Assembly (NCBI GenBank): GCA_964035545.1
Contig: OZ037773.1
Span: 8,213,751-8,277,750, forward strand
Length of the DNA: 64,000 nucleotides
Reading direction: 5' to 3'
Source: Bugula neritina
Lineage: Eukaryota > Animalia > Bryozoa
The notes under the pieces were generated by a model. It was not told where the DNA came from. It saw nothing but the letters and a program-made list of their open reading frames with translations, and did not search any database. Both the position numbers and the translations under genes were made by a program. Each line of letters opens with the position of its first letter. Position 1 is the first letter of the stretch. Of the stretch, positions 2,689-48,436 are shown piece after piece.

Positions 2689-5019
2689 ATGAAATCTGTA
2701 CTAGGAAATTTAACTTTAGCCGCCGTGGCAGTGACTGTGTTCGCGCAAGTTGCGTTAGCAGAAGACAATGTAACGACAACTACGCCATCAAAAAGTGGAG
2801 TCAAAGTACCGGAATGTAAGAAAGGCATACTAATACCGCTATGGGAGCCAGTAGACAATATTTCAAAGGGAGACAAGGCTGCCAGAGCCATTGTATATTT
2901 TATAGCTCTCGGCTACCTCTTCCTAGGTGTGTCTATAATAGCTGACAGGTTTATGGCTAGTATAGAGGTCATTACTTCTAAGGAGAGAGAGATCATAGTG
3001 AAGAGACCAAACGGGGAAGTGATGAAAGTATCGGTGAAAGTGTGGAACGAGACGGTGTCCAACCTCACCCTAATGGCTCTGGGATCGTCTGCTCCTGAGA
3101 TTATGCTGTCCATCATAGAAGTGGTTGGTGAGTCATCCAGCACTTCCACTTTCTCTCTTTGTAACTTTACTTCCTGGTCAGTAACTGTGAGAGCCTAGTG
3201 CAGAGTTTCTGAAAGTTGCAGGTTCTAACAGAACTTTGTATATAAGAATTGACTGACTAGCAAATAAAGCAATGACTCTCTAAACCCAAAAGCTAAACTA
3301 AAACTTATACACTAATGTTATACAGGAATGCACTTCTCTGCACTTGTTAGACAGAATTCTATACAGATAAACTGCTTAATTGATACTTTCGACTAAATAA
3401 CTGTAAACTATCGGCGCAAAGACACAAGTTCTTGTTGCTTAGTGACCGATCACGCTGTAGATAACATCGAATACACAATTTCCTAAAGTTTCATGCTGTA
3501 ACCTCAACCTCTTAAACCTTCCAATGTCATATTTATAGCTTCATATTTTACTACTAAGAAAAGCAAGGATTGTATTTATATGACTTAATCTGTGTGACTT
3601 GATCTGTGTGACTTGATCTGTGACTTAATCTGTGTGACTCAATTTGTGACCTAGTATGTGACTCGGCTGATGGAAGCAGTTTTTATCTTCTACTAGTCAG
3701 GTTTGTCACTGCATATCTCTACTAAAAACTTCTCTGCCTCCATAAGACTAGTAAAGAATGTTAGCTCATTCCTCTACCTCTCATAAAATAGGCCCTTACC
3801 AACACTGTCAGTACAACCAATTGAGTTCTATCCTATAGTAGTAAATTAGTTACCTGCGTGCACTGTAACTACAAGTGTCAGCGCTGTAAATAAGTGACAT
3901 CTAGCTGCATGTGCTTCCATTTTCTCATGACATGACTAGAAGGATATAACCGTACCAAGAAAGGTTAACAGATATATAAATATAGGTAGAAAAGTAAAGC
4001 AAGACGCTTAGAACGTCCAAATGCATGGCCAACTTAGTTGCTGTTCCACGTGAGATGTTATTTGCATATCGTATAATGTAAGTTGAGCATGGCCGTTACT
4101 ACTACCAGAGGAACTACTACCAGAGGACAATGAGCTTCTATTCAGCCTTAGGCCAGGCAATCAATTGTAGCATCAGAAGTTGTTTGCTCCTTAGAACAGA
4201 GTCATTTTGTCACATTCTAACTTGAAACATAGAGTAGAAATTTTGGATGCATCACCTTTTCATTCAACTATTTTTCCCTCAACTTTAGCAATGAACTAAG
4301 TGTAAATAACCATTAAAATAGTTCCATCCCTCTAATCTGGCATGTTGGCTATTACAAAAACCAAACATTACTCTTGGAAAATTGCAGCTTAAGTTAGATA
4401 TGGATTCCAGGGTAATTAAATTGTAATTTATGTGCAGGATTCAGCTGCTAGCCATGTCTCTAGTAAAAGGAGGTGCAGTAATGGAGAAATTGAGAAAAGT
4501 CTGTGTTTTAGATTAGAAATGTAGCAAAAGAAGTTATGTTCCCGCAACAATTTCAACCCGCCACGCCCCAAACGAAAATTTTAAAACAAAATTTAAGAAC
4601 TTATGCTATCTCAATTTCTCTGCTACTGCTCCTATATGATAAAATAAGCATCAGCTTTCATTAGCAATCAGAAGAACTGCCTGAAACTCGTGTTGATATT
4701 AATTTGCTGTGTTTTTGTTGTGCAGGTAGAAACTTCAAGGCCGGAGATCTGGGACCGGGTACCATTGTTGGCTCAGCAGCATTTAATCTCTTTGTTATCA
4801 TCGCAATCTGTATATACGTAATCCCAAGCAACGAGGTGCGTCAAGTCAAACATCTCCGGGTATTCTTCGTGACTGCATCATGGAGTGTCCTGGCCTATGT
4901 CTGGCTCTACCTCATCATTGCACACATATCTCCTGGGGAAGTTGAGGTAGCTAAGCCACCCTTGTTTCTGAGATTGAAACGTTTGGTTCTCAAGCTGATT
5001 ATTTTGTCAGTTGATTGAT

Positions 5020-5054
<35 letters not shown>

Positions 5055-8000
5055 CTTATTTATTTATTTGTTTATTTATTTATTGGATGTCATAGAAATT
5101 CAAAGTGTTGCAAAATTCAGTGTAAGTTGTGTTTGAAGTTTTCAAATGATGGCAAATTTTGACATGAAACCATCCAGCATTCATTCTGTGCTGTCGAAGA
5201 GAAACAAGCTTCAGACTGTATTAATTCTTACATATAGCAGACCTCTTGCAGCCTCCTAAAATGTTTATCAGTTAGGAAAGAGTGGGAAAGACTGTGTCTT
5301 CCAATGGTTAATAATCTGTTCTACCTGTGAGACATACTAAATACACTGCGATCTAAGATTGGAATATTAACTTTACATAATTCATTTATATATATGTTTA
5401 TCTTTGGCAGCTCTTCTTTAAAATGAATATTGGTGGTTAGAAAACAAAAAAAGACGCAGCCTTGCTTGCTTGGGCTTTTGATTGCTTTTTAGTGAGTCAA
5501 TTTTAATTAGTTTTGGAAACTCATTTTGGAAAATTAAAGGAGTAAACACACAACTTGAAATAGAGAATACTTGAGTATATTATGTTGTTAGCAATGTCAC
5601 TAACTAGCATCATCTACTGCGTGACCATCACTAAAACAATATAATATTTTATATATATATTTATTTCATCATAAATCAAACTACTTTTTAAATATCAACA
5701 AACAGCATAACATATCGATATATTTATAATTATCATTGTTTTCTGTTTTTACTTCTGTGATTGCTCGCACTTTCACCTGGCTTTTATTTTTTTGACCAAG
5801 AAAAACAGATATAAAAAAATAAAATAGATCAAAAATTTGGCAACTAGTGTTCCACCATATTATCATACTTGCGACAGGTGAATGGTAAAAATACACATTA
5901 GTTAACCTTGTCAACTGCAGTTTACATTGTGTAATTGTGCTCTGGTTGATAGAAAATGTATTATTAGTTTAGAGTATGGCTTGTAAAGAGTATGAGTGAA
6001 ATGGATTCATCATCAAACGCACAGTTGTTCAATTAACTTTCAATGTTTTTTAAAACTAACTTGCTTTAAAGAAATTTTAACAAGTTTTAGCAAAATTAAT
6101 GTTTGTCTAAACAAACTATCTTGACCTTGTTACAGAGATCATCTACAGAATACTTATTTAGCTACAAATAACCTTGACATTGTATCTTGGCTATATACTA
6201 CTTGTTGTACAGATCTGGGAAGGAGTGCTAACCTTCATCATGTTCCCGGCCACGGTGATAACTGCGTGGATAGCGGACAGGAAGCTCTTCCCAAAGTTCA
6301 TAGCTAAAAAGTATCACACCAGCCGACACAAGGGAGTGATTGTTCAGTCGGAGGGCATGACTGACATTGAGATGGAGGCTGATAGAGAGGTCAGTTATGA
6401 AAGTCGCGCAAACACTCGCTTTTATTTTCGTGCTCATATCATAAAAAGTATTTTGAATGATAACCAGCCAGTACCTAACTGGTAAAATGAATTTTCTCGG
6501 CTCATGAAACTAAAACTAGAAAGCATATTACGTTTAATTTTTTTGTAAACTGCAATTTGATATCCGAAACATCATGCATTTAAAGGAAACAACTCCAAAT
6601 AAACTGATAGTATATGAAAAAATTACAGTTCCAACGTTTTAAGGTATAAAAAGTGACAATTTGACATAATGCGAATCAAAAGATATAAACAAGATGACGT
6701 AATGCCACTAGTAACGTGATGAGCAGCAGCAAATAAACCTGTTAGTAGTAAGAATTCTTTTATTCCAAATAAGCAAATTTCCTGTTAGTAGAGAATTAGC
6801 TGCAGTGCAACTCTTCTATTACCTCAATTATTCAGCAACAAAGTGTTGAGTCTATCATTTTCATTGTGAATTAATGGCCAATATTATTCATCAATAAAAT
6901 CAGTTAACTAGTGGTTATTGTAGAACATTACTTCTGCTAATTGAGATATTACATCATCGCCTCGCCCTATCCCTATGATGTTAGCAAGTTTGATATTGCG
7001 TTGGTACTTTATATACTATATGGTTATTCATTGCTCGGATCAGAATAGATAGTGGGTGTTCACTTTATCACTGGACAGCCATGTTGCCATTTTCTCATTT
7101 AGTCCTTCATACGTCTGCGATATCCACTGCACATCTCAAAGCTTTTATTTTTGTCAAACTGACAATAAATTTGTCGAGCAAAACCTGAACAATTTTCTGT
7201 TTTTTCGTGGGTAGACAACTTCTTATTCTATATTTATTCTTTAAAGCCCAGACCTCATATACCTTAAAATTCTAGTAGAAAGAACCACGTACATGTTGTG
7301 TATACTAACTCTTTAATCCATGTTCACATTGCACCAACTACTGTTTGCAATTTCATCACGTTAATAATTTGTTTATAATGTTTCAGATGGCTAATGAAGA
7401 TACAGATGTGTTACTGTTTGAGCAACACAGAAAGGAATACATTGAAATTATTAGAGAATTACGAAAGAAGCATCCTAATATGGACATGAAGAGTTTGGAG
7501 GAAATGGCAGAGTACGAGGTTGGAATCAGATACTCAATAATTCAATCAATGTCACTCATTTAGTCTGTCAATCACTCAGCCAGTCACTGTAACTAGTTTA
7601 GACAGCTAGTTACTTAGGTAATCAGTAACTGTCAATCAGTCAGTCATTTAGTTATCTAATCAACCAAGCCAACTCTCAGCTAATTTTTTCATCTTGTATT
7701 GCTAAATTACACACTGTATATCATTCTGTTTGATTGAACACATAAAGTAGTTCTGTTATACTATCTAAATAGCATATAATTCAACTCAAATTTTTAAACT
7801 TACGACACCAGGTTATGAATCGAGGACCTAAGTCTAGAGCCTTCTACAGAATTCAAGCTACTCGAAAGCTTACAGGGGGAGGTAACGTAATAAAGAAAAA
7901 GTTGGACAGAGAGCATAAGAAGAACCAAGGTAAGACAGTTTAATGCAGTGTGTATCTCTACTACTTCTACACTCTATTTTTGTTTTAGAGGAAGATATTT

Positions 8001-11000
8001 GTCATCAACTTAGACAATTGTGAATCTCATGCCATCTAATGGCTAATAAATTAAAAATTCACAAATCCTGTCACACAACTGCAAGTTTTCCACTGTATTA
8101 AGAGCAACTTGCTAGTTTGAAATGCTTCAAATTAATAATAGATAAACACAAATAATCATTATTATCAATGCCATTATCACTAATTCAAACTTTTATATAT
8201 GACTGTTGCCTTTAATATATGCTGTTGTTTATCAATTATTTGTGATGCATTAGAAATTGTCTTCACTTTTGCTTCTATGAATTTTACAGAGCTGATTCCA
8301 GGTAAAGTTAGTTTTTATATTGTAATCTTGTCGTAGAGATTTTTTAAATTTCTGATTAGTGCATCGATTTCTTGATCATGAATTTCTCATCTGTTTGATT
8401 TGTTCTGTTGTTAGTGAATGTTGGGAGTTGTTCACTTTCGGAACCAGTTAGAAAATATTTGAAAAATAAATTGATCTCAAATTAAGTACTACCTCATAAA
8501 CATGTTTAAATGTTTTTCATGCAAATATATTCAAACTGTATAAAAGTATAGGGAAATTAAGCAGAAGAAGAGGTTAGCATCTATACAACTATTATAGTAT
8601 GTTTCATGGCTCAAAACTTCTCATGCAACAAATTATTTACAAAATTTTGAAAACTGCCACTAACAGTTTAAAATTAATAGATTATTATTTTACTTGATGA
8701 ATTTTTATAATCATGAATAGCTGATTGAGTAAAGTTTTTACTTGTTTGCAGCTATATAAAATTTCTTATTTTCTAATTGCTGGTATTGGCTGGTTGTTAG
8801 TTACTAGTTACTAGTTGCTAGTTGCTAGTTGCTGATTGCTAGTTACTAGTTGCTAGTTGCTGATTGCTAGTTACTAGTTATTAGTTGCTGATTACTAGTT
8901 ACTAGTTGCTGATTGCTAGTTACTAGTTGCCAGTTGCTTGCTACTAGTTACTATGTAACTACTGATAGCTTTTTGCTAGTTACTGCCAAGTAAGAACTTC
9001 TTATGGATCTCCTATGATTAAAGTTTCTGCTCTAAGTCAATCCTATCCATTATGAATGCTGTATATTTCTGTTGTGATTTTATCTTTCAGTATAATAGTA
9101 GTATGTAGAAAATACTGAAAAGTAATTTCAAGTTTGATTCACACCTCAATCTGTATGACATTTCATCATGGATGTTCCAAATGGAAAGACACCATATTAT
9201 TTCTGGCAGTTTTTGGACTGTTGTCTGCATACATATTCAGTAACACATGTTTGTTGTTAACTAATAGTACCTTCTGCTGTTTAGGCTCAGTGTATGACCG
9301 TGAGTATCTATTCAATGCCTAATCAGCTTGCGTTTGGTGATAAAATATTCCTTCATGCACATCTTGTACTACGAGAAGGCAACTCCTGTTTTATATTTCA
9401 CAATACTTGTCAATTATATTTAATGTTCTAAAGGTTATCCACGCCTTATTTGAATGGCTTAAATTCTCAAGACCTAAAATCTTTGTCCAAGTAGACCTTC
9501 AATGAAGATTTCAACATTTTAATAAAATTTTATGTGCTAAAATTTGGTATTTCAGTGTTCTAAAAATTCTTGCTTTTAAAAACAAAACAACTTGCTAAAA
9601 ATAAAAGCAGACAAAGGTTGAAAGCTTTAGTGAATAAGTTAAAGCTAGGATTGCAGCATAAGTTAGATATGCGAACAAAGTTGCTGTAAAAACTGACATG
9701 CAATTTTATAACTTTCTTTGGCATATTGGCAAAACAAGTGGAGATGTTTTGAAGGAATATTATTTTACTAAGATAAGCAGCGAGAGTGCAAGAAGTGTGG
9801 TAGGAAGAGTATACAACTACTAACTTTGAGTAACTCATAGCTATCAAAGTGATAATATTGAGTGAGTGTTTATAGCTATCAAAATGATAATATTGAGTGA
9901 GTGTTTATAGCTATTGAAATGATAATATTGAGTGAGTGTTTATAGCTATCAAAATGATAACAGTGCAGTGCAGCTTTAGCCAGTGCAGCTTATAGTGCTT
10001 GTTTGGTAGTCTTTTCTTTAGCACTTGGTTTCTACTAGATCATTGAATATAGTCAGGTCTGCACTTTCAACTCTTGCATCACATGTGCACGATTATGTTG
10101 TGTAGAGAATTTAGGAAGATGGTGGATGGTTGGCTAATATCATTTTAGATAGAAGATAGTAGTTTATAGCATTCGATGGCTTTCATGAAATTTTGTTCGA
10201 ATTTCAGCTAGCAATAGTATTTAAAATTAAAATTTAAATACTTCAATTGAGGTTGCTGACTGACCTTGAACTTTAGAAAGTATTTATGGCATCAGGTCGA
10301 CTGCATGTAAAATCACATTTTGGCTGCATTTTGATTGGACAGTTTCATTGCTTATTGGTTTCTTTCCAACAGCCTATAATTATATTGATATCTAGTTTTT
10401 ATTGTATTAATTGGAGCAAAATGTTTTTTTGTACAATAAAGACATCTAGTTTTAGCTGAAGTGGATGAAGAGGGAGTGTTGATGATGTCACTTCCTTTCA
10501 TGTTTCGCATGATAATCTATGATTCCGTTACTTAATGTGTTGCTCAAACACTTAAAAGAAGGGAAATAATAATATTATTTCCCTTGGTATTTTAAGTAAT
10601 GTGTGTATATTATACACACATTACTTAAAATATCAAACTGCTTTAGATTACCCACATTTTCAAGACAACTTGTTGGAAGTTGTTACATAAAACTTTTGAG
10701 AAATTAGGCTATAAGTAGTCAAGTTACTATAGTCTTTCCATCTTTGATTCCAGATCTCCAATCTCTGTAAGGTTTAACAGCCCCAAAGTTACAACACATT
10801 GTGTAACCACTCTACATTATGACTATATAGCTTATTTAGGGTGTAAACCTGTTGAATAGAATGGATTACAAAATGTAAAACAGTATATAAAGGAAACCAG
10901 CATAGAGTCTAACAAAATATCAACTTTTAGACTTGAAATACGAAAGCTGTGTGGCAAGGCGTGAGTGTTACCAGACAATACCAGACATTGTCTGCTGTTT

Positions 11001-36573: not shown

Positions 36574-38656
36574 AATAGACGATGTAAATTTGGTACATTT
36601 AGTACCTTGTACCAACTCTAGAATACTCACCACTATAACTTATATAAACTTCTGCAAGTTCAAATGCAAAATGCATACTTTTAGAAAATAGCTGTGCAAC
36701 TTTTATTACATGCATTATTTTATTTCATATCTTAAACTTATGAACCATGAGTTCATTTTTCAAAATGTTTAAATTAAGTGCTCAAAAAATGCAATTAAAA
36801 TTTTTATTCTTGCACAAATACCCTGGTGCAGTTTGACCACAACCCCAGCTGTTTTGACAAACACATTTAATGGTTTTTTTATTGACATAGTGGTGAATGA
36901 GCTGGTTGTTTTTGGCAGTTGGGTAGACTTGAAGCTTGGCAGCTTTTAAACAATTCTGATTGGCAGAATTTTACACGATAAGTTGATGTTTGTATCTGAT
37001 TGGCCTAATAATGCATTTGCATTTGAAAATGTAGAGTTTTATTTAAGCTATAATGGTGATATTTTAGAGTTGGCACACACCCCTTTTGGGTTGAGTTTTA
37101 TAGTCTGTTCCTGCTGCAGTCATCTACAACAACAGTGTATAGGGAAATTATTAGTATTACGAAATCTGTTTTGGCTTACTTTGCTATGCCAGTATTCTGA
37201 CTTAGTTTGTAATCAACTATGTTGGCAGTTAAAACTGAGGGTGATTTCATCAAAGGTGGACATTGCTGAGGCCTTAGAACATCAAATCAACCAGTGCTGT
37301 TACTTGGTTGTATTGTAAAGCAGTAGTGAGAGCATAGCACACTATCACAGTCACTGAGCTGCAATGACAGTGGCTACACCAAACTCGTCAGTTCTATTAT
37401 ATTATCTTATGTAAGGCACGTCAAAACAATATAGACCCACATGCAAGGCACTACATGCTAATACTCATTTTTATACAAAATTTCTACATTATCTATTGCT
37501 AATAGCTGTGCATTTAAATCCAATGCAGATGAATATGTGACAGAGTAAAAAGCTACTGTTTTACAAATTTAAAATAAAATAATAGTGCGGGTACACAAGC
37601 AAATAATTTATAGTTAGCGTAGGCTAATGCATTTGTAATGTGCATGTTAAACAACTTTTTTATAATTTATTACATTAGACTATGAGAATGTATTTAGTAG
37701 TATGTATTGATTTAAAACTAAATCATGAAATGATTATCATTATTGCAACCTCTGTGCTTGGTAGACAGGATAGAGAGGGGTGGTGTGACTGCTGTAACTG
37801 TGCTACTGCTCTACATACTAACAGAGACTAGGCTAGTGTTTTGACGTGCCTTACATACTGTCATTGCAGCTCAGTGACTGTGATAGTGTGCTATGCTCTC
37901 ACTACTGCTTTACAATACAACCAAGTAACAGCACTGGTTGATTTAATGTTCTAAGGCCTCAGCAATGTCTACCTTTGATGAAATCACCCTCAGTTTTAAC
38001 TGCCAACATAGTTGATTATAACAAAACTAAGTCAGAATACTGGCATAGCAAAGTAAGCCAAAACAGATTTCGTAATACTAATAATTTCCCTATACACTGT
38101 TGTTGTAGATGACTGCAGCAGGAACAGACTATAAAACTCAACCCAAAAGGGGTGTGTGCCAACTCTAAAATATCACCATTATAGCTTAAATAAAACTACA
38201 TTTTCAAATGCAAATGCATTATTAGGCCAATCAGATACAAACATCAACTTATCGTGTAAAATTCTGCCAATCAGAATTGTTTAAAAGCTGCCAAGCTTCA
38301 AGTCTACCCAACTGCCAAAAACAACCAGCTCATTCACCACTATGTCAATAAAAAAACCATTAAATGTGTTTGCCAAAACAGCTGGGGTTGTGGTCAAACT
38401 GCACCAGGGTATTTGTGCAAGAATAAAAATTTTAATTGCATTTTTTGAGCACTTAATTTAAACATTTTGAAAAATGAACTCATGGTTCATAAGTTTAAGA
38501 TATGAAATAAAATAATGCATGTAATAAAAGTTGCACAGCTATTTTCTAAAAGTATGCATTTTGCATTTGAACTTGCAGAAGTTTATATAAGTTATAGTGG
38601 TGAGTATTCTAGAGTTGGTACAAGGTACTAAATGTACCAAATTTACATCGTCTATT
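36574..38656. repeat. long inverted repeat (foldback): arms 36574-37428 and 37837-38656, ~410-bp spacer
   Basis: The left arm starts AATAGACGATGTAAATTTGGTAC and the right arm ends GTACCAAATTTACATCGTCTATT. By eye the arms differ only by about 3 substitutions, a 2-nt and a 4-nt indel and one ~36-nt indel near the inner end. Confidence 0.95.
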
Positions 38657-38735: not shown

Positions 38736-39549
38736 ATGAAAGTTGCAGTTTCAGAAAAATATGAGTTTTCCCTGGTAACAGGCATGCTTAGAATTCAAAG
38801 CTCTTCCTCACTATCAACCTGTTATGAGTCAATGTCTCTATGCTCCGCAGGAGTTGTCTTTCTTCAGAGGATAGATTTACTTTTTATAGAAGATCAGTTG
38901 CCACTCTTCTAGAATATTTATATTTATCAGAAAAAGCAGCAAAGGTTGCTCTTTGTTATTATATTAGATTACTATTGAAGGAAAACAACAATTTATTTGT
39001 TAAAATTCTATTACTTTATAATATAGTTGTCAATCTTGTACAATAATGCAGTTGCTAAGCTCAATTGGCAATATCAGTTATCCTCACTACCAGTGAAGAT
39101 AACTTATTATGTAACGCTTCAACTGTTTAGCAGCTCTTGGTGTTTAATGTGAACAACTTTGTTATTCAAATTATGTTTTTTATTTGAAGTTTTCTTCTTT
39201 GCATAAACACAAGAAAATTCAAATTATGCATTATGATAAATCTATAAATCTATAATTTGATTCCATCTATAGAACATATGCAATATATGATTATAATAGG
39301 CTACTAAACACAGATGTACAAATACAAAAGTGAAAATATAATATTTTGTATACGAATATATTGGGTGTAAAAGTTTTTAAAATTTTGTTTTATAAACATG
39401 AGCAAGAGCATGGATAAAATTTTTAATAGGTAATGTTTTGGTTTATGACTTCAACTAAAATATATTGAGAGCTTTTGTATGTGTATGTAGGCATAGAGTC
39501 AGCAAGTTTTTGGTAAGCGCTTGAAAGCCAAAGGGCTTCTGTTTAAATT

Positions 39550-42500
39550 CTAAATTGTCTGTCGATTTGGTGCTTGTCGGATCAGCCTATTCTGCGGTTT
39601 GAAACACCCAAATATAATATTATTAGCAACTGAATTATTCGAATTTGGTGGCTTGAAAATGTTTCTTAGACATAACTTTCGATCTAGAGTCGATCTGAGC
39701 TCCGATATTTGACCAGGAACTTCCGCCCTCAGTCTCTGTCTGGTCTTTAAGAAGATGTCGTAGATATCCTCATTACACCCGGATCTTCTGAGAATGTCTG
39801 CGAACATCTCAAACAGCTTTCCTCTGACAGCGCTTCCACCATTGATGGTAGACATCAGCACAATGAAGTCATCATGGAGGATGTCAAAATGAGTGCTGCT
39901 GGTGCTTGAAGAACAGCGTTCTTCTTCCATTTCATTCAGTTCCTTCTTCTCTGTTTCGATAAATTTTGTAACAGCGCCTGTTAACTGCTTGATGTGGTTT
40001 CTTTTCCAATTTCTATGCTTTTGAGTCGCACCAGCTGGGAGCATTTGGTCTATGACTGAGTCTGGCAGGGGCGGGGGTGACACAATGTGTGACGTCCTGT
40101 AGTGATGTGTTAGTATGGTGTTCAGGTTACGTCGTGTGAATGGGGAGATAGCACCAGGCATTTCCTGTTTATTTTTTGCGCCTGGTATTGGAGCATCTCT
40201 CACTAAGTCAGCATAACCTGAAGTAAAAAGGACTCAATAAATCTTATTATTAACAAGGCAGTTCATCTTAAACTTTTAATTTACATCAACTAAAAACTAA
40301 ATTCAACTATCACTTATATTATTGAAATGGGCTGCATACAAGTTTAGCTCTACAATTTAACCTTAGCAAGTTTCCTTATGCTTCCTGTATCTAACTATAC
40401 TCTCCATTGCCTTTTGTGAACATGTTTTAAAGCAGCCAAAAATAATACTTCTACTATTATTTCATACTACTTTTAATTTGAAAGCAAATTTCTAAAAGGA
40501 TCAAAGCGGAGTAGCAATTGTTCTTTGTATGTGTACCAACTTGAAATAAACAAATATCATTCTAACTCGATGAACCAAATTAATCGATTGTTGCTTATAT
40601 TCTAAATCAAGTTAATGTTTGATAATTTATAGTGAGCACATACAACAGCATGCCATATGCCAGGCTCGGAGTTCCGGGCATATTTAAACACCTGGAAGAT
40701 TAAATTAATGTATAGTTAAAGTTGTCTTTGCAATGACATTTGTAGCTAGTGTGTTGATAAATTAAACCAAACTTGCTAATTACTAGTTAGATACTGCTTT
40801 TACAAAAAACTGTTATTAATGTTAACAAATAAAGTGGTAGCTAAATTGTTCTGTTATTCAAGTAAAAACTTCAATAACTTAGAATTTTAAAACAGCTGTA
40901 ATATATACTTTCTATCTATTTTTAATAGTATTTAATTTATTTTAATCATAAATAGTACTTGTCATCATCAATAATAAATATAAAAATATTTTTGCAATAT
41001 TCACTAAATAATGAATTAAATTATACATATATAACTTTAAAACTTGCGTTAAAAACCAGATCAGATAATATTGTAAGGCTATGGCACTTAATTATGTTTA
41101 CCGGAGTTGTGTTTCCTCTTCCCATCCACTAGAGCAGTCACCTGACACGCTTGCAGCAGTAGAATCTACAAGTGAACCAGTCATCTGTATTTCGCATAAC
41201 TTTGAAATCTAGCATTTATAAATGTCAGGTATGAGATTTGAGACTTTTCTGTGATTGGTTGTAATTATACTACAAAATTATGCGCGCTTTTAATTTGAAC
41301 GTATTAACTCTGTACAGGTATCTGTGACTCACCTTTGGTTTTCCTTCCAAGACTTTTTGGTTCATAGAAATGAGAATATCCTGAATTCGCACCAACTCAT
41401 CCTTCGCCCAAACAGCCCCTTTAACGCCGTGTCCCATGACCGCAACCAGAAGACCTGATGAGTCTTCCTCAGACGCCGTTTCTCTTATCTGTTTCAGCAT
41501 GTCATGTGCGGATAAGTTTCGCTTTTTGGTTACTCTAACTTCAAATTCCGGAAGCACTTCCTCCAAGTACATGCACTCAACGTCGGCACCTTCTCGCTCC
41601 ACTGTCGTGTACAGAATCAACACTCTCACTGGACTAGTCAACAGGTAGAAACCTTCTTGGCTCTGCACCCAGCTCAGGAGTGATTTCATTGGCTGACTCA
41701 TTGTCACATTACAAGGCGTTTTCCCCTGACTGTTGGAGGCAAGAACCGCTTTGTTTTTATCAGCTTCCTGGAGGGAAGTAAGGTATTGGACTGCAGCTCT
41801 GTAGTGGTTCAGTTTGACTACCACGTGCAGAAACGTATCTCCTGTGCCTTCTACTGTTTCACCTACCAGATCCTTTGCTTCTGTAATTAAAACATGGTTT
41901 ATTACACAACTACAGGGATGAGATTCTGTAGTGATTCAATAACTGGAAGCAGATATTTCTAACAAATTATGTAATGTGGATTCAATTACATAATTGTTAG
42001 CATGTGATAAGTGGTTGTGGACTCATTCACAGCTCATGACATCTTCAACACAAATGTACATATGTTCCACTATATAATATTTATCATATACACATACATA
42101 TATTCTACTAGATGATCTATATCATATATGCATGTATGTATATATTATTACACATGTACAATCAGATAGGTTCTTTCATACACACACCCATATACATGTA
42201 TATGCAACCAGACTATTTATAACAAACACATGCTAATAATATTTACCCTCATTGCTCATTGGCCAATCATCAAGGAGACCCTCTGCCATCTGATGATCAT
42301 GTCTGCTAAGGAGATTCATTCTCTGTTGGCCATTGCAGGCCCGCAGCAAATGTCTAAGGAGATCTGATGCAGGCTGAGCTGACTTTTGAGTAATAATGCT
42401 ACTTATGACTGTGTCTCCATCTTTTTCTGTAATGTGTAACAAGTCTGTCCATTGTGGGTGTTCCTGGACCGAGTTCACCATGATTTTAGCCAACTTGAAA

Positions 42501-43756
42501 AGTCGTGAATCCCGTGACGCCACGAGTAAAGCAGTCTCTCTTTTTGCATTTGGCAACTTCAGAATAGCTAATCGGCTTTCTATATCCAAAGAATTGAGTA
42601 AAGATTTTAATATTTTCTCGCGCTTCTTTTCAATGTGCAAACAAAGATGAATGGCTGTTTCTTTTCTGAGATCCTGTAACTGGAGAAGGCTGTGTGTGTC
42701 GCGTTCAGTCAATCTGTTTAAGATGTAATCTATGGCCTCGTCGTCACACTTTTTTACTGCCACATGCATCACAGTTCTAAGATCTTCGCCTTGTTTAAGT
42801 AAAATGTTCACTTGCTCTCTTTCATTGTGATTTTCCAGAAGAAGTTTCAGTGCTTCAGAGTTGCTGTGAAAAGCGGCGCGTAGCACTCGTTTTGTCGCTG
42901 TATCTATTTTCTCTACATCATTAAAAGTGCATTCATTATGGGCTGATAATAGAGATTGCATTGGACCTACAAACCTTCTCTTCACAGCCAAATCATACGG
43001 AGTTCGTTGAGATTTGCTTTTAATTCCCAACATTTTGAATAGTACTGATCTGGGAACGGATTTGATAATAGCATTGGTCAAATTGAAATTGTTGTTACCT
43101 ACTGCGATGTGTAAAGCAGTTCGACCTGAGCACTTTGTTTGAATTCGCAGTAATTCAAACCGGTTGGCGACTTGCAGTGAATCCACGAGCATCATCATTA
43201 AATTTGTATCGTTTTTGTTGGCGCATAAATGGACTGCAGTGTATCCCTCTGAGTCTCTCTCTATCAGTAGTTTCAGTTTGTCTTGCTCTTCTAATCTATG
43301 GAGAATGCAATGTACAGCCTGTAGATTTGGCAGTTCATTATTCACGATATGATGTAAAACAGTTCTACAGTTTGCGTCTTTTGAGTTTAGAAAGAAGAAT
43401 GCCTGGTGTAAGCTCAGAGTTTCAGTGATATCTAAGATCGTTTCAATTCTGTTGTTGCTGGCCAGACAGTGGAGGACAGAGAATTTGTCGGTCGAAGACA
43501 TGTCTAACAGTTTTAGACACTCGTCATTGGACAAGCTGCTCAAGATGACTGCAATCTTATTGTAACAGTTAGAATTAGCCAATAAATGGAGTATCTGTAG
43601 CCCTGATTCATTCTTTTGAAGAAAGAAATTCGCACGCAGACCAGCCGGGGTTACATTCAGAAAGTCTTGTAGCTCTGTGTTACTAGAATGCTGGATTATT
43701 GATAGAAGGCTATCAATATCATACGAATATGCACTGGGTACCATTTCATCCTTCAT
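39550..43756 (-). CDS. ankyrin-repeat / caspase (peptidase C14A) fusion protein, ~929 aa, 4 coding exons
   Basis: Exons 43756-42247, 41880-41333, 41165-41102, 40217-39550 are GT-AG, phases 1/0/1, total 2790 nt. About 12 ANK-like repeats (GxTxLH). p20: VLILY...REGADVE...RNLSAHDM...LVAVMGHG...GKPK|ILLLQACQ. p10: DFIVLMSTINGGSAVRG...DIYDIFLKTRQRL...QISELRSTLDRKLCL. Confidence 0.88.
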
Positions 43757-45899
43757 TTTTCACCTTTAAATTCACTGATCTGAAAGGTAATAAAAGCAGT
43801 AGTTTTATGTAAAGCCTGAAGCTCACGCTAATACTTATAGCACAAGGACATGTATAGTTTTATTAGTTAGTTTCATGTAAGTTTTAAAAAATGCCTAACT
43901 AACAGCAATTTCTGAAACATTAGTCATAGCCTCTGTACCCTATCGTATTTTTCCTCAGGTTTTCAAGTTTTAGGTGCAATATTTAAGAATTAAATAACAA
44001 CTTTAAGCTGTAACAGGAAGCAGGTATGGGTACATGTAAAAAACCTGCATGGCTACGATAGAGGCAGAAGAATTATCGGGGATAGAATGATATAATAGCC
44101 TACCTTTAAGGGCTTTATGACTACGAGTGTGAGACTGTGTGGCAGCTGAGCCAGGCACCCTTATACTGATAAAGCGGTGTAACACGGCGCTCCAGGTTGT
44201 GTAGCTATTTCTTTCCTCCTTAGTTCGCTCATGTTTGCCTTTATAGTTGTGCCTACTCAAGAGATGAGTGTTTACTAGTTATCAATACAATGGTTGCCAA
44301 AAAGTGCTACTGATCCAATATGAGCTCGACTGGCAAATCAGTTTAGTTGATTGTTATAAATCACTGCCCATATAATCTTATCTATACCTCGTATCTTTTT
44401 GAATGAAGTGGGGAAATCCAAGTGTCATATTGCCTACCGATAGCTCAGTCACGTGATCGGTTCCGGTCCCAAACAAAGCACTTTATGCTGGTTGCTCATC
44501 CATAAAAAAATGATTTATAGTTAGAACGGATGTCATAAAACTTTCAATGTCACCCTGATGTCCCAGCAGGAGACTGTTGTCATTTCATCATCCAGTAACA
44601 GTAACCTGGTGACTTTACTCCACCCTTTATCGGTGCTAGTTGCTTCCTGTGGGAGACCTCACCAACCACCACAAGATGATGCAATGAGAGCTGAGGCTAT
44701 CCTGCAAGAATGCAGTCCCACAGCACTCAGTGATATGCTAAATAGCACACCTTATAACTAGCCTGTATGGCGCAAGGGTTGCAGTAATTTGACTACTATA
44801 TTATTTCAGTAGAATTGATGCTGATCACTTGTAACAATTTATCAATTACTTTTGCTGTTGTCAACTTTACCATACAGTGAGTAGGTGCTGTGATGGGTGA
44901 TGCAGATGCACCAGTATGTATGTCCATGGGGAAAGTTCTAGAAAATACCGGAAACTTCTATCAAAAATATTGCTTCATAAAACAAATTTTATACAATAAT
45001 TAAAATAAATCTTTCTCCACTACTGCTCCTAAATAGCAGTCACACAATCCCATTCAGGGTGTTTCCTCTCAGTTACATTGTTATAAAGTATAAAGGAGTT
45101 GTGATTTAGTTTATTTTGTTTTATTTGCTAAGGTGTCCTCATACTGATAATCATTCATTAAAACCAATCAAGCTTGACATGTTTTGCTAAAGTAATAATA
45201 GCCAGGGCATTGTCAACTTTTTGCAACCCAAGATAAGAGGTTTCGTAACCGTGGTGACCAAAGTAAAACTTGCTGCAGCTCAATTTACTTAAAGAGCATT
45301 TGACACTCAGTCGCTGAGGGAAACAGCTGTTTGTGCTCAATATCCAGTGTTTGCTGTATTAATGTTTTTCAGCTGAGTTCAAATCAAAGTCGTGTAGGTG
45401 CAGCAATCAAAAGTACAATTATCAATTATCTTTATAAATATTTTTGGGGGCAAGGGTTGAAAGTCACAAGAGAATATAACTTCTAGCCTTTTTTCATATT
45501 TTCACATTACTACACCTATCCTATAAAGGAGAGGTGTTAAGTAAGTGGAAATTTATTTATTTTAATATATAATAAATGTAAGATTTTATGGCTGCATTAT
45601 CAATTTTCATTTTATTTTGAAATTATTCAAACAATATTTACTTAAATAACTTTATTTTTCAAAACTTACCAAGAGTTGTCTTCTTTTTCATTACTTCAGA
45701 CATATCAAGAATCAAGCAATATATCTGACGTCCTTAAAAATTAAAACAGATTTGGTGGAAGTGAAAGCAGGAGTTTAAGCAAATAAATGAGACAATCAGA
45801 TCTAGGCAATCATCTGCAGTGGTATGCAACACATCCATGGCACACGCAAGTTTGTTTCATTCAAATTCTAGCTTGTGATGTAATTTTTGTCTACAGCTC

Positions 45900-46101
45900 G
45901 TCAAGTCATCATTCCATCAAGTCATTATTCCATCAAGTCATCATTCCATCAAGTCATCATTCCATCAAGTCCTCATTCCATCAAGTCATTATTCCATCAA
46001 GTCATCATTCCATCAAGTCATCATTCCATCAAGTCATTATTCTATCAAGTCATCATTCCATCAAGTCATCATTCCATCAAGTCATCATTCCATCAAGTCA
46101 T
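45900..46101 (+). repeat. 16-bp minisatellite
   Basis: TCAAGTCATCATTCCA x ~12. Confidence 0.9.
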
Positions 46102-48436
46102 TAAGTTATGAAGCAAAATTTTATTGACTTATAAAGCCACATTTTACTACAAAAATAAAAGTAAAATTAGCAATTAGCTGTCCAATGATTAGACCAAATA
46201 ATCGAAATTTGGTAAAGATTACATTATAATGCACCGTTTACAATCAATGAGTAAGTAACTGAAACTATAATAGAGTTGATAATGAAGAAAACTGCATATT
46301 GCTGCAGGAATTAAATTATCAGTTTCATAAGTCAAACGAAAGCTAGGAGTGGCTTCATTGTAAGCTTTATGACTGCTTTAAGTCACAGCTTAGACCAGGA
46401 AAAGCTAACTTTACAATATACTCATCGGCATAGAATGCTGCCACTATAATATAGTTTCCTCTCCCATAAAACACATTGTATATAGGTATTATATAACAAC
46501 TGGAATATGTAGACAACTGATTTAATTCTATGATTTAATGTAATAGCATACAATGCTGTCATTATAATATAGTTTCTTTTCCCATAAATCCCATTCTATA
46601 TAGGCCTATTATAGTAACAACTGTATGTTGGAATATGTAGAAAAATAATATAATTCTATGATTTAATGTAATAGCATAATATAGTAATGTAATATAATGT
46701 AATGCAGTGCAATACAATATAATATAATAATATAATATAATAACATAATATAATGATATGATATTTTATCCCAACTCAGCCAGGGAATTATCAAGTTCAG
46801 CGTTGGGGAAGATGAAGTCAATTCAACAAGTTTAGGTTGTGAATTCCTATATTTCCACTATCCATGTCATTAAACATTTATTTATTTTTCTATTTGTAAT
46901 TATGATTGACTGGAAAATAAAATCATTGTCCATCATTTTTAGCAAGCCTTTTTAGTTTTGAAAATTTGTAATTAATATAAGATTATGGTGAAATAAGTAG
47001 CAGATCTGAGCTAGGCACAACATATACTAGCCATCTTATCTCTAGACATTTAAAAGGAGTTGTGCTCTCTCTTATAAGAACCACTGTATAAAGATATATG
47101 ACATTATAAGTTATTTTTATGTAAAGAAAAATGGTAAAATGTTGCAGGAAGTACATGCCTGTGGTGAAACGGTACTGTGGGGCATTTTTCTACTTCCTGT
47201 ATAACATTATGAATGAAGCTTAGTTGGCAAGAGCTGCTGAAGTCCCCTGGGAGGGTACATCCCCTCTGGAGGGCACAGCATCCTCTCCTCCACTTTACCG
47301 CACTTCTCAGCTGCACCCAGAAGCACAGAGCAGCATTTACATTCTATCCGAATTGAAAGGCTTCGACTATTTTTGTATTTGGCAATGTTTCAAGGTTGTT
47401 CTGCATCTCGATGTTGTGAATGGTCCAATCACCACTCTGGGAAAACAATTCAACGGTGCCTTAGGCGTATATTATATAATAATGCAGTTCAAAGTTTGCT
47501 GCGATGAAATGATTATTCTATTAATTATGCAATTGCATATAAATTATATGACGTGTTTGTATAATTTGGTTGTTTTCTATTGTATACTGTTTGTTCAAGC
47601 ATAATTTCTTAGAATTTCAAAAATATAAACCAGGAATGTCCAGAGTCTCATTATTTTCACTTTTGCAGTTAACGACTAAAGTGAAGTAGCGAGATGTGAA
47701 ATACTGACCCCCAAACAGCCTTGACCGAAATAAGACTGCAAAGCAGGGCAAAACACATTAGGCTATAGTTAGTCTCATAGCAATACGAGAAAAGTATGAA
47801 CACATCCTGCACAACCTTCTGCTGGTATCACATTCCTTATTGTGGTTAAGAAGTTGTACCAGGTAAATTATTTGGGTTTCATCAATAGTTGGGGAACCTG
47901 ATTTACATAGCAGCAGGCATAGTCTGAGCCTCCCCCACACCTCTGAGTGTACATGTAGCCTTGTTCAGGAGTTTAGCTTAATGTAGAAACATAGTACTGT
48001 GTATGAGTGTAGTACAGGGGGTGTAGTACAGCGCAAAAGTGTAAGGGGTATAGCATATTGCAGGGGTATAGCACAATGTAGAAGTGTAGTACGGTGTGGA
48101 GAAGGAGGGGAAGGTGTAGGACAATGCGGGTACATTTACACAATACACAAGTCTAGAGTAGATGTACTCAGTTATTACCCTCATTGTTATTCTATTGATG
48201 AGGTCAGTGAACATGTAGGTTAGTTGGTCACACCTCTGTCCCATAAGTTGACATCAACTTGAGTGACTCCACCAGCTTCCTCTGCTGCCTTGGGCTACAC
48301 AGCTAACAGTGCTGCTGCTTTTCTACTCCCTAAATAACATCATATTTATTCTATTTTATAACTTATTTTATTAGATATTTTATTTGGTAATGACAATGCT
48401 CTAATTTATTTCTCACTTGTTGTTACAGAATAGATC

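Follow-up and report, generated by a model that had tools for sequence, protein, structure and literature searches.

A transcribed gene of the bryozoan Bugula neritina joins an ankyrin-repeat array to a caspase

Introduction

How could a caspase be activated if its prodomain is an array of ankyrin repeats instead of a death-fold domain? The question is raised by a gene on the minus strand of a 64,000-nucleotide stretch of the genome of the bryozoan Bugula neritina (the window), which is located on contig 9 of the 216-Mb assembly. Initiator caspases have long prodomains and long linkers between their subunits, and are activated by proximity on death-fold sensor or adaptor platforms that use CARD or DED domains, whereas effector caspases have short prodomains and short linkers. 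The gene in the window encodes neither a CARD nor a DED, but about 500 residues of ankyrin-like repeats followed by a caspase. The gene is intact and transcribed, and we consider it probable that its product is an initiator-type caspase, in which the ankyrin solenoid provides recruitment and dimerisation provides activation.

The initial annotation of the window, made from the sequence alone, did not recognise this architecture as that of a characterised animal caspase. The architecture is, however, already named, present in database predictions from another bryozoan, Watersipora subatra, and common in the Bugula genome. ANK-Caspases are named in the study 'Evolution of apoptotic signalling pathways within lophotrochozoans' (bioRxiv 10.1101/2023.12.11.571055), which covers molluscs, annelids, a brachiopod, and platyhelminths, and does not mention bryozoans. 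The flatworm ANK-Caspases form a monophyletic clade that is restricted to parasites and is the sister group of the DED-caspases (bioRxiv 10.1101/2023.12.11.571055); they were first reported from Schistosoma, by Lee et al. 2014, as cited in the same study. The annelid Alitta virens has one ANK-Caspase, which is probably convergent, and the authors propose, without biochemical data, that ANK-Caspases are initiators with an unknown activator (bioRxiv 10.1101/2023.12.11.571055). Caspases with kinase, TIR, PARP, ROC, and Z-binding prodomains are also listed there, which makes unusual prodomains a recognised theme of lophotrochozoan caspases. No biochemically characterised ANK-caspase was found in the searchable literature, and among the matches listed for Bugula and caspase there was no treatment of bryozoan caspases.

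The Bugula gene is a new bryozoan member of the ANK-caspases and belongs to a distinct small subfamily. It is a well-supported case, since the fused mRNA was seen directly, the key residues are conserved, and the coding sequence is constrained, and it extends the known range of the ANK-caspase layout to a third lophotrochozoan group. ANK-caspases represent a recently named and biochemically untouched alternative to the CARD- and DED-based activation of textbooks. The gene offers a starting point for asking how a non-death-fold prodomain activates a caspase, and why colonial bryozoans keep so many caspases.

Results and discussion

The ankyrin and caspase exons form one gene

The coding sequence of the ANK-caspase gene extends from 43756 to 39550 on the minus strand and is divided into four exons, 43756(ATG)..42247, 41880..41333, 41165..41102, and 40217..39550. 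The introns between them are all of the GT..AG type and have phases 1, 0, and 1. The joined open reading frame (ORF) of 2,790 nt has 929 codons, and its only stop codon is the terminal one. The four in-phase exons and their three junctions had been predicted from the sequence, and all of them are used in RNA contigs from public data. These data comprised the 2016 RNA-Seq libraries X1 and X2, both labelled as symbiont metagenome, together with a DNA data set, X3. With an identity of about 92-94% to the window, the RNA contigs come from a sibling lineage and not from the sequenced individual. They cover the exons alone and leave out exactly positions 40218-41101, 41166-41332, and 41881-42246; in the DNA run X3, the introns at these positions are present. 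A single contig of 1,543 nt (X2 record 8) contains the final part of exon 1 together with exons 2, 3, and 4, and exons 1, 2, and 3 are linked in X1 record 2. The ankyrin exon and the caspase exons are thus joined in one mRNA, and hence encode one polypeptide chain; the possibility that they belong to separate genes, which the initial annotation had named as one outcome that would overturn its proposal, is contradicted by the X2 contig. At the first junction, the RNA differs from the window by two letters, with the synonymous change of GAA to GAG. Exon 1 of the RNA contigs contains two pairs of insertions and deletions, each of which compensates within 2-4 nt, so that the reading frame stays open in the sibling lineage.

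The 5′ end of the gene contains an untranslated exon. An acceptor AG is located upstream of the ATG, at 43781/80, and three in-frame stop codons lie between the two, which indicates that the ATG at 43756 is the start codon and that there is at least one untranslated exon further upstream. Past 43781, the RNA matches positions 44106-44135 uniquely, with three mismatches, while the expected number of chance matches is zero. This match places the 3′ end of the exon of the 5′ untranslated region (UTR) at about 44104. The resolved part of the exon (44104..44135, minus strand) is followed by a donor GT at 44103-44102 and by the 5′-UTR intron (43780..44103, GT..AG), which is defined by the sequence and the RNA contigs. 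Past the 5′-UTR junction, the RNA contig continues upstream for 239 nt or more.

Exon 1 (42247..43779, minus strand, as all features of the gene) was delimited by its ORF, Pfam matches, and a repeat profile, and is covered by RNA contigs over 42247-43781. It codes for residues 1-503, which form an N-terminal helical cap and the ankyrin-like array (residues 49-503, positions 43612..42248), and ends after the first base of codon 504. Intron 1 (41881..42246, 366 nt, phase 1, GT..AG) is skipped in the RNA of X1 and X2 and covered by the DNA of X3. Exon 2 (41333..41880), identified by the Pfam family Peptidase_C14, alignment to drICE, and the predicted fold with its Foldseek matches, encodes the last ankyrin repeat (residues 515-551, positions 41848..41738), a connector helix, and the N-terminal half of the large subunit, p20. 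The codon of Arg599, which belongs to the S1 pocket, is located at 41596-41594, and that of the catalytic His654 at 41431-41429. Intron 2 (41166..41332, 167 nt, phase 0, GT..AG; RNA joint 41165/41333) separates exon 2 from exon 3 (41102..41165), which is 64 nt long and has RNA joints on both sides. Exon 3 encodes the active-site strand ILLLQACQV with Gln691 and the catalytic Cys693 (41147-41145). After intron 3 (40218..41101, 884 nt, phase 1, GT..AG; RNA joint 40215/41100, cut +2), the coding part of exon 4 (39550..40217) is defined by a Pfam match of 2.9e-3, the family profile of the small subunit, p10, and RNA coverage of 39499-40218. Exon 4 encodes the inter-subunit linker, p10, a C-terminal tail, and the stop codon at 39552-39550. 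The linker comprises residues ~706-815, from the tail of exon 3 and from exon 4, and p10 residues ~816-895 (39894..39655), with the codon of the S1 residue Arg839 at 39825-39823. The 3′ UTR reaches at least position 39499, where the coverage by the RNA contig ends.

Of 35 listed differences between the window and the RNA contigs in exon 4 (residues 793-926, in p10 and the tail), 23 are located at third codon positions (binomial p = 9e-5), a bias indicative of purifying selection on the p10 region. The changed codons number 30, with 20 synonymous and 10 non-synonymous changes. The RNA runs demonstrate the presence of the transcript in ordinary colony or symbiont RNA, for which no challenge was stated.

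Structure of the ankyrin array

Exon 1 matches the Pfam families Ank_2 (4.8e-14, five stretches), Ank_3 (6e-11), and Ank (9e-8). A hidden Markov model (HMM) that we built from the repeats of the array identified eight clear units of 37-39 residues, namely residues 49-87, 88-126, 127-165, 168-206, 208-246, 324-361, 362-400, and 515-551. The E-values of the individual repeats, 1e-13 to 1e-19, are circular, as these repeats themselves were the source of the HMM. The stretches 247-323 and 401-514 are occupied by about four degenerate units with equal spacing. The initial estimate of about 12 ankyrin-like repeats is therefore firm for eight of them, while the remainder are degenerate, and the period of the array is 39-41 residues instead of the canonical 33, with one third of the units weak. 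The AlphaFold2 model of exon 1, calculated from the single sequence, is all-helical over most of the array but has a mean predicted local distance difference test (pLDDT) score of only 48. The same low-confidence model contains two clear repeats (residues ~161-218) as strands, and it was not used for the fold search or for counting the repeats.

A Pfam search of exons 1 and 2 with E-values up to 1 identified no CARD, DED, PYD, or Death domain, in agreement with the initial annotation. The two domain families that it had expected a Pfam search to return are both present (Ank_2 at 4.8e-14 and Peptidase_C14 at 1.8e-10). Together with the spanning RNA contig, the Pfam matches establish the layout of an ANK-Caspase, with an ankyrin prodomain located N-terminal to a caspase in one polypeptide. 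A word-index search with the ankyrin exon returned only weak generic ankyrin matches within its target length window of 277-880 residues, which excludes proteins of 929 residues.

The caspase domain retains the catalytic and aspartate-binding residues

Exon 2 matches Peptidase_C14 (PF00656; MEROPS C14A) with an E-value of 1.8e-10 and 41.3 bits, against a cut-off of 21.4. It also matches the large subunits of caspases with solved structures, including drICE of Drosophila (9.4e-8), Sf-caspase-1 of Spodoptera, caspase-3/6, and ancestral caspase-3/6/7. Arg599, in the sequence VEREGADVE, aligns with the S1 arginine of the SRAG motif of drICE, and His654, in VMGHG, with the catalytic histidine of its SHG motif; both residues also align with their counterparts in Sf-caspase-1. 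Gln691 and Cys693 are part of the segment KPK|ILLLQACQV, which is interrupted by the exon 2/3 junction. Arg839, in SAVRG, aligns with the arginine of the SYRD motif of caspase-4 p10 in the family profile alignment. As read from these alignments, the His-Cys dyad and the Arg, Gln, and Arg residues of the aspartate pocket are all kept, and the complete p20-linker-p10 unit described in the initial annotation is present. Arg599 and His654 are conserved in at least 90% of 67 family sequences, Gly655 is invariant, and the Q-x-C motif is retained in every relative whose Cys exon was seen.

The p10 subunit was compared with solved structures using a profile of eight sequences, which comprised this gene, its likely orthologue, two paralogues, and four further relatives. 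The top 39 matches of the profile are all caspase chains, followed by three weak matches that are not caspases (E 0.23-0.9). The best matches are caspase-4 (1.7e-4), caspase-11, and caspase-8 (1.1e-3). The linker from Cys693 to p10 is about 110 residues long, which is much longer than in effector caspases. Candidate self-cleavage sites, as judged from the alignment, are Asp700 (ALVD|G) and Asp819 (THFD|I). At the position of Asp819, the likely orthologue and both paralogues also have Asp, whereas P0037 of Watersipora and the relative P0098 do not.

The AlphaFold2 model of exon 2, calculated from a 67-row alignment, has a pLDDT of 94.4 and a predicted template modelling (TM) score of 0.81. It consists of ankyrin helices, the connector helix, and a beta-alpha-beta-alpha-beta core. 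The pLDDT is 86-98 across the ankyrin-p20 junction. This junction is short, and the three paralogues share an unchanged LLSW..Q.G.Y motif ahead of the first strand. In a Foldseek search with the model, the 50 PDB matches listed are all caspases (caspase-6, -3, -1, and -2) with a probability of 1.00. The TM-scores normalised by the target are 0.6-0.72 for large-subunit chains, and the root-mean-square deviation is 2-3 Å for most rows over about 123 columns. The six best structural neighbours in the ESM-Atlas are caspase clusters, and four weak rows (TM 0.44-0.48) are not caspases. The caspase-like fold that was anticipated for the domain is therefore borne out for the part encoded by exon 2. 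By its sequence and, for the first half, by its predicted fold, the domain is a true C14A caspase.

A metacaspase or paracaspase was considered and ruled out, since animal caspases account for every significant sequence match and for the 50 listed PDB fold matches, and since the S1 pocket has Arg, Gln, and Arg.

ANK-caspases in the Bugula genome

The whole assembly contains at least 177 exon-level matches to Peptidase_C14, which is a very large caspase complement for 216 Mb. Many of the matches are organised in tandem arrays, for example at C1 32.8-35.5 Mb, C6 3.5-6.3 Mb, and C7 7.58-7.71 Mb. The initial annotation had suggested looking for an expansion of paralogues, and one is present, consisting of a four-member subfamily that includes the gene studied and of at least 13 further loci. 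In all, the genome has no fewer than 15 loci besides the gene studied that combine an ankyrin exon with a caspase. At each of the 13, the caspase exon is preceded, at a distance of 1.1-2.3 kb and in the same orientation, by an ankyrin exon. Four of them are arranged in a row at C2 30.51-30.55 Mb and three at C9 9.32-9.36 Mb, whereas single loci are found at C2 26.76, 31.06, and 32.92 Mb, C5 0.35 Mb, C6 3.45 Mb, and C7 5.54 Mb. At eight of the 13 loci, the caspase match starts between model positions 44 and 51, and at four others at positions 1, 32, 38, and 52. The gene studied differs from them in having the last ankyrin repeat and model positions 14-121 on one exon. The difference suggests, from the exon sequences, that the 13 loci represent a separate lineage of ANK-caspases, or several. 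The ANK-caspase layout thus occurs in at least two exon structures within the Bugula genome.

The module with the last repeat and the start of p20 on one exon occurs at only four loci in the genome, including the gene studied. The member at C3:22.65 Mb (L019, G000:C3:22643000-22652999, minus strand 8919..4351) has an ankyrin exon of 829 residues, which is a single exon, the active-site motif QACQM, and a short inter-subunit linker of about 30 residues. The member at C8:11.45 Mb has the motif QACNK, and no Pfam match was obtained on the single upstream ORF tested. At C2:10.64 Mb, ankyrin repeats and p20 are encoded in one frame of 572 residues. The gene studied and the C3 and C8 paralogues share a phase-0 intron after KPK and a Cys exon of 61-64 nt that ends in phase 1 (the length in C8 is approximate). 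The mutual identity of the three proteins is 25-35%, and Arg, His, Q-x-C, and the p10 Arg are retained in all of them.

Relatives in other organisms

The profile of the exon-2 module has 2,054 representatives at E <=1e-3, 31 of which are below 1e-30. Most of the matches are exon-sized ORFs of about 200 residues from metagenome or run assemblies. The nearest relative belongs to the P0006 cluster and is 50% identical in exon 2. A metagenome contig of 5.9 kb from this cluster (L052, ENA ERZ23498975 scaffold_5410) contains an ankyrin exon, the exon-2 module, and an exon-4 homologue in unchanged order. Its ankyrin exon, with a called ORF of 526 residues, is collinear with that of the Bugula gene (30% identity over 462 residues, E 1e-60), and its exon-4 homologue includes the long linker (39% over 163 residues, E 3e-37). 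The strand with the motif QSCQV adjoins a scaffold gap. In a maximum likelihood tree of 67 modules, the gene studied groups with P0006 (support 100/96), the C3 copy with P0004 (94.7% identical in exon 2 by BLASTP; P0004 is found in JGI/IMG and Logan data), and the C8 copy with P0007 (68% identical). The gene of L052 is likely to be the orthologue of the gene studied. Since each paralogue pairs with its own relative from outside, the three paralogues are older than the splits between the source organisms. Relative to the likely orthologue, the ankyrin array has diverged faster (30% identity) than the caspase (50% in exon 2 and 39% in exon 4).

The idea that the ankyrin exon, which lacks introns, is foreign or was captured recently was also considered and is unsupported, as the likely orthologue has a collinear single exon and the C3 paralogue a single exon of 829 residues.

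The nearest annotated relatives are RefSeq proteins of Watersipora. Two predictions from Watersipora subatra contain ankyrin repeats followed by Peptidase_C14 according to Pfam, XP_067951279.1 (P0037, 557 residues), named 'serine/threonine-protein phosphatase 6 regulatory ankyrin repeat subunit A-like', and XP_067937378.1 (648 residues), named 'uncharacterized protein'. The automatic RefSeq name of XP_067951279.1 hides its caspase domain. The pair shares with the Bugula gene the ankyrin-to-p20 junction module (profile E 2.5e-29 and 4.7e-16), the order of the domains, and the phylum. Unlike the Bugula gene, however, the two proteins are shorter computer predictions with about 25% identity to it, and they are located on other branches of the module tree. 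A word-index search with the caspase part of the Watersipora protein returned only the query itself; the tool is too insensitive to detect the flatworm ANK-caspases.

In the ANK-Caspases of flatworms and Alitta, as in the Bugula gene, an ankyrin prodomain replaces the CARD or DED in front of the caspase, and all of the organisms are lophotrochozoans. The Bugula gene differs from them in its repeat period of 39-41 residues and in having the last repeat and the start of p20 on one exon, and the Bugula family differs in being multi-copy, with several exon structures in one genome. A common descent of the bryozoan and flatworm fusions is doubtful, because the clade described in the preprint is restricted to flatworms. 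A more distant arrangement is found in the 1,878-residue protein XP_048241358.1 (P0008) of Haliotis rufescens, which contains Peptidase_C14 (residues 36-258), an nSTAND3 nucleoside triphosphatase (NTPase) domain (residues 307-470), and about 28 canonical 33-residue ankyrin repeats. It resembles the Bugula protein in combining a p20-related caspase (profile positions 72-183) and many ankyrin repeats in one chain of a lophotrochozoan. However, the order is reversed, a STAND NTPase is placed in between, and the protein is NLR-like, so that it does not have the same architecture.

A feature search of the ESM Atlas yielded a eukaryotic cluster of 55 members (commonest phylum Arthropoda, ~951 residues), all of which have Ank and Peptidase_C14. 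The search also points to bacterial clusters with Ank and Peptidase_C14, and all the scores, at just 0.85-0.90, mark these clusters as leads. According to these leads, the ANK and C14 layout may be distributed more widely than in lophotrochozoans.

Proposed activation mechanism

In the mechanism that we favour, the ankyrin solenoid would stand in for the CARD or DED prodomain and serve as a protein-binding platform, gathering at least two caspase domains on a binding partner or an assembly. Dimerisation would switch the protease on, and the ~110-residue, partly conserved linker would then be cut at an aspartate, for which Asp700 and Asp819 are the candidates. The outcome would be an initiator-type caspase with a non-death-fold recruitment domain, operating within a very large caspase repertoire. 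As scaffolds, ankyrin repeats serve to bind proteins, more often than small ligands. The recruitment function is suggested by this scaffold nature of the repeats, by the long prodomain and long linker, which are features of initiators, and by the lack of another candidate domain.

The Bugula protein resembles death-fold initiators in several respects. Like caspase-8/10 with their DED and caspase-2/9 with their CARD, the Bugula protein combines a long interaction prodomain with a long linker. It has Gln after the catalytic Cys (QACQ-) in common with caspase-8/10, and the p10 of caspase-8 is among the best profile matches. Unlike the death-fold initiators, it has no CARD, DED, or Death domain, and its active-site motif is QACQV, not QACQG. 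In addition, its prodomain is a solenoid of about 500 residues, which in the model is linked to p20 by a short structured connector, whereas the prodomains of death-fold initiators are flexibly tethered.

Several observations weigh against the proposed mechanism. The best p20 sequence matches, drICE and Sf-caspase-1, are effector caspases and do not favour an initiator role, and the short linker of the C3 paralogue indicates that a long linker is not a feature of the family. The p10 match of exon 4 alone is weak (Pfam 2.9e-3; best PDB sequence match E 0.76), and the fold model is limited to exon 2, which contains the last ankyrin repeat and breaks off in p20 immediately ahead of the Cys strand. 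At the active site, the pentapeptide reads QACQV instead of QAC[RQ]G, with positions 4-5 atypical. Furthermore, compared with caspase-4, the loop of the substrate groove that immediately follows the p10 S1 Arg is shorter by about five residues in the family, and the predicted specificity, or even the activity, may therefore differ from those of textbook caspases. Together, the atypical pentapeptide and the shortened loop call for caution about activity and specificity. The selection estimate is based on 35 of the ~57 differences in exon 4, and 224 further differences across the gene lie outside this sample.

Alternative explanations

The initial annotation had put forward a one-chain sensor-executioner, in which a ligand would bind the ankyrin array and cluster or de-repress the caspase without an adaptor. 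The ligand could be a host complex, a molecule from a pathogen, or a danger molecule, and activation would resemble that of RNase L. The ankyrin repeats of RNase L bind 2′,5′-oligoadenylate (2-5A), which leads to dimerisation of the effector domain. As a mechanistic analogue, RNase L likewise carries ankyrin repeats at its N-terminus and, at the C-terminus of the same chain, an enzyme with a destructive function. Its effector, composed of a pseudokinase and an RNase, is unrelated to caspases, and we claim no homology beyond that of generic ankyrin repeats. We consider the sensor function unlikely, although compatible with the data. The usual adaptors could not engage a protein with no death-fold domain, and the last repeat, the connector, and p20 form one confidently modelled unit, in which direct mechanical coupling might be possible. 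The faster evolution of the ankyrin array than of the caspase is often seen in recognition surfaces, but would be no less expected of a scaffold under relaxed constraint. The strong expansion of the family in the genome is of a kind often found among immune receptors. However, none of the data specifically supports sensing, the RNA runs report the presence of the transcript and not its regulation, and the partners of ankyrin repeats are in general more often proteins than small ligands.

It is improbable that the array is a targeting exosite, which would localise the protease or select its substrates for limited, non-lethal proteolysis after activation by an upstream caspase, for example in the remodelling of tissue when zooids degenerate and regenerate or when larvae undergo metamorphosis. 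Such a function would fit the best p20 matches, which are effector caspases (drICE at 9.4e-8, Sf-caspase-1, and ancestral caspase-3/6/7), and the transcription in ordinary colony or symbiont RNA with no stated challenge, and the very large caspase set could supply the upstream activator. On the other hand, a prodomain of 580 residues and a linker of ~110 residues contrast with the short ones of effector caspases, and the p10 family profile fits caspase-4, -11, and -8 best.

Little probability can likewise be given to a broader scenario, in which the members of the bryozoan subfamily would be independently evolved, phylum-wide, self-contained death proteases. Their long-period solenoid, rigidly coupled to p20 through the LLSW..Q.G.Y motif, would directly sense a partner and gate dimerisation without a death-fold adaptor. 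As part of the greatly enlarged caspase repertoire, with its 177 or more caspase-exon matches, the proteins might serve the colonial animal in innate immunity, in allorecognition, or in the control of symbionts.

A catalytically impaired regulator similar to cFLIP, which would keep the dyad but be a poor enzyme and would pair with and modulate other caspases of the family, is very improbable. The motif after the catalytic Cys is unusual and varies within the family (QACQV, QACQM, QACNK, QSCQV, QICQR, and QSCLT), five residues are deleted after the p10 S1 Arg, and p10 is very divergent, as might be the case in such a regulator. However, His, Cys, and the three S1 residues are retained in the gene, in paralogues with 25-35% identity, and in the likely orthologue, and the conservation of Arg599 and His654 in at least 90% of the 67 sequences would be unexpected for a decoy.

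An artefact in which two neighbouring genes were misjoined, or a decaying pseudogene, has a negligible probability and is ruled out by the single RNA contig that spans exons 1-4 with exact GT..AG junctions, the open 929-codon frame, the RNA indel pairs that compensate within 2-4 nt, the third-codon-position bias, and the collinear exon order in the likely orthologue and the C3 paralogue, the only weak point being that the RNA is from a ~93%-identical sibling lineage and not from the sequenced individual.

Neighbouring sequence

A near-perfect inverted repeat is located at 36574-38656, about 0.9 kb past the stop codon of the ANK-caspase gene. Its arms of 461, 174, and 165 nt are 98-100% complementary and surround a centre of 485 nt. 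It could be a real palindrome or a fold-back of the assembly. On the other side of the gene, a tandem array of a unit of ~16 nt (ttgatggaatgatgac and variants, in minus-strand reading) is found at ~45880-46000, about 1.8 kb upstream of the 3′ end of the 5′-UTR exon. The array forms a repetitive ORF on the plus strand, at 45787-46104.

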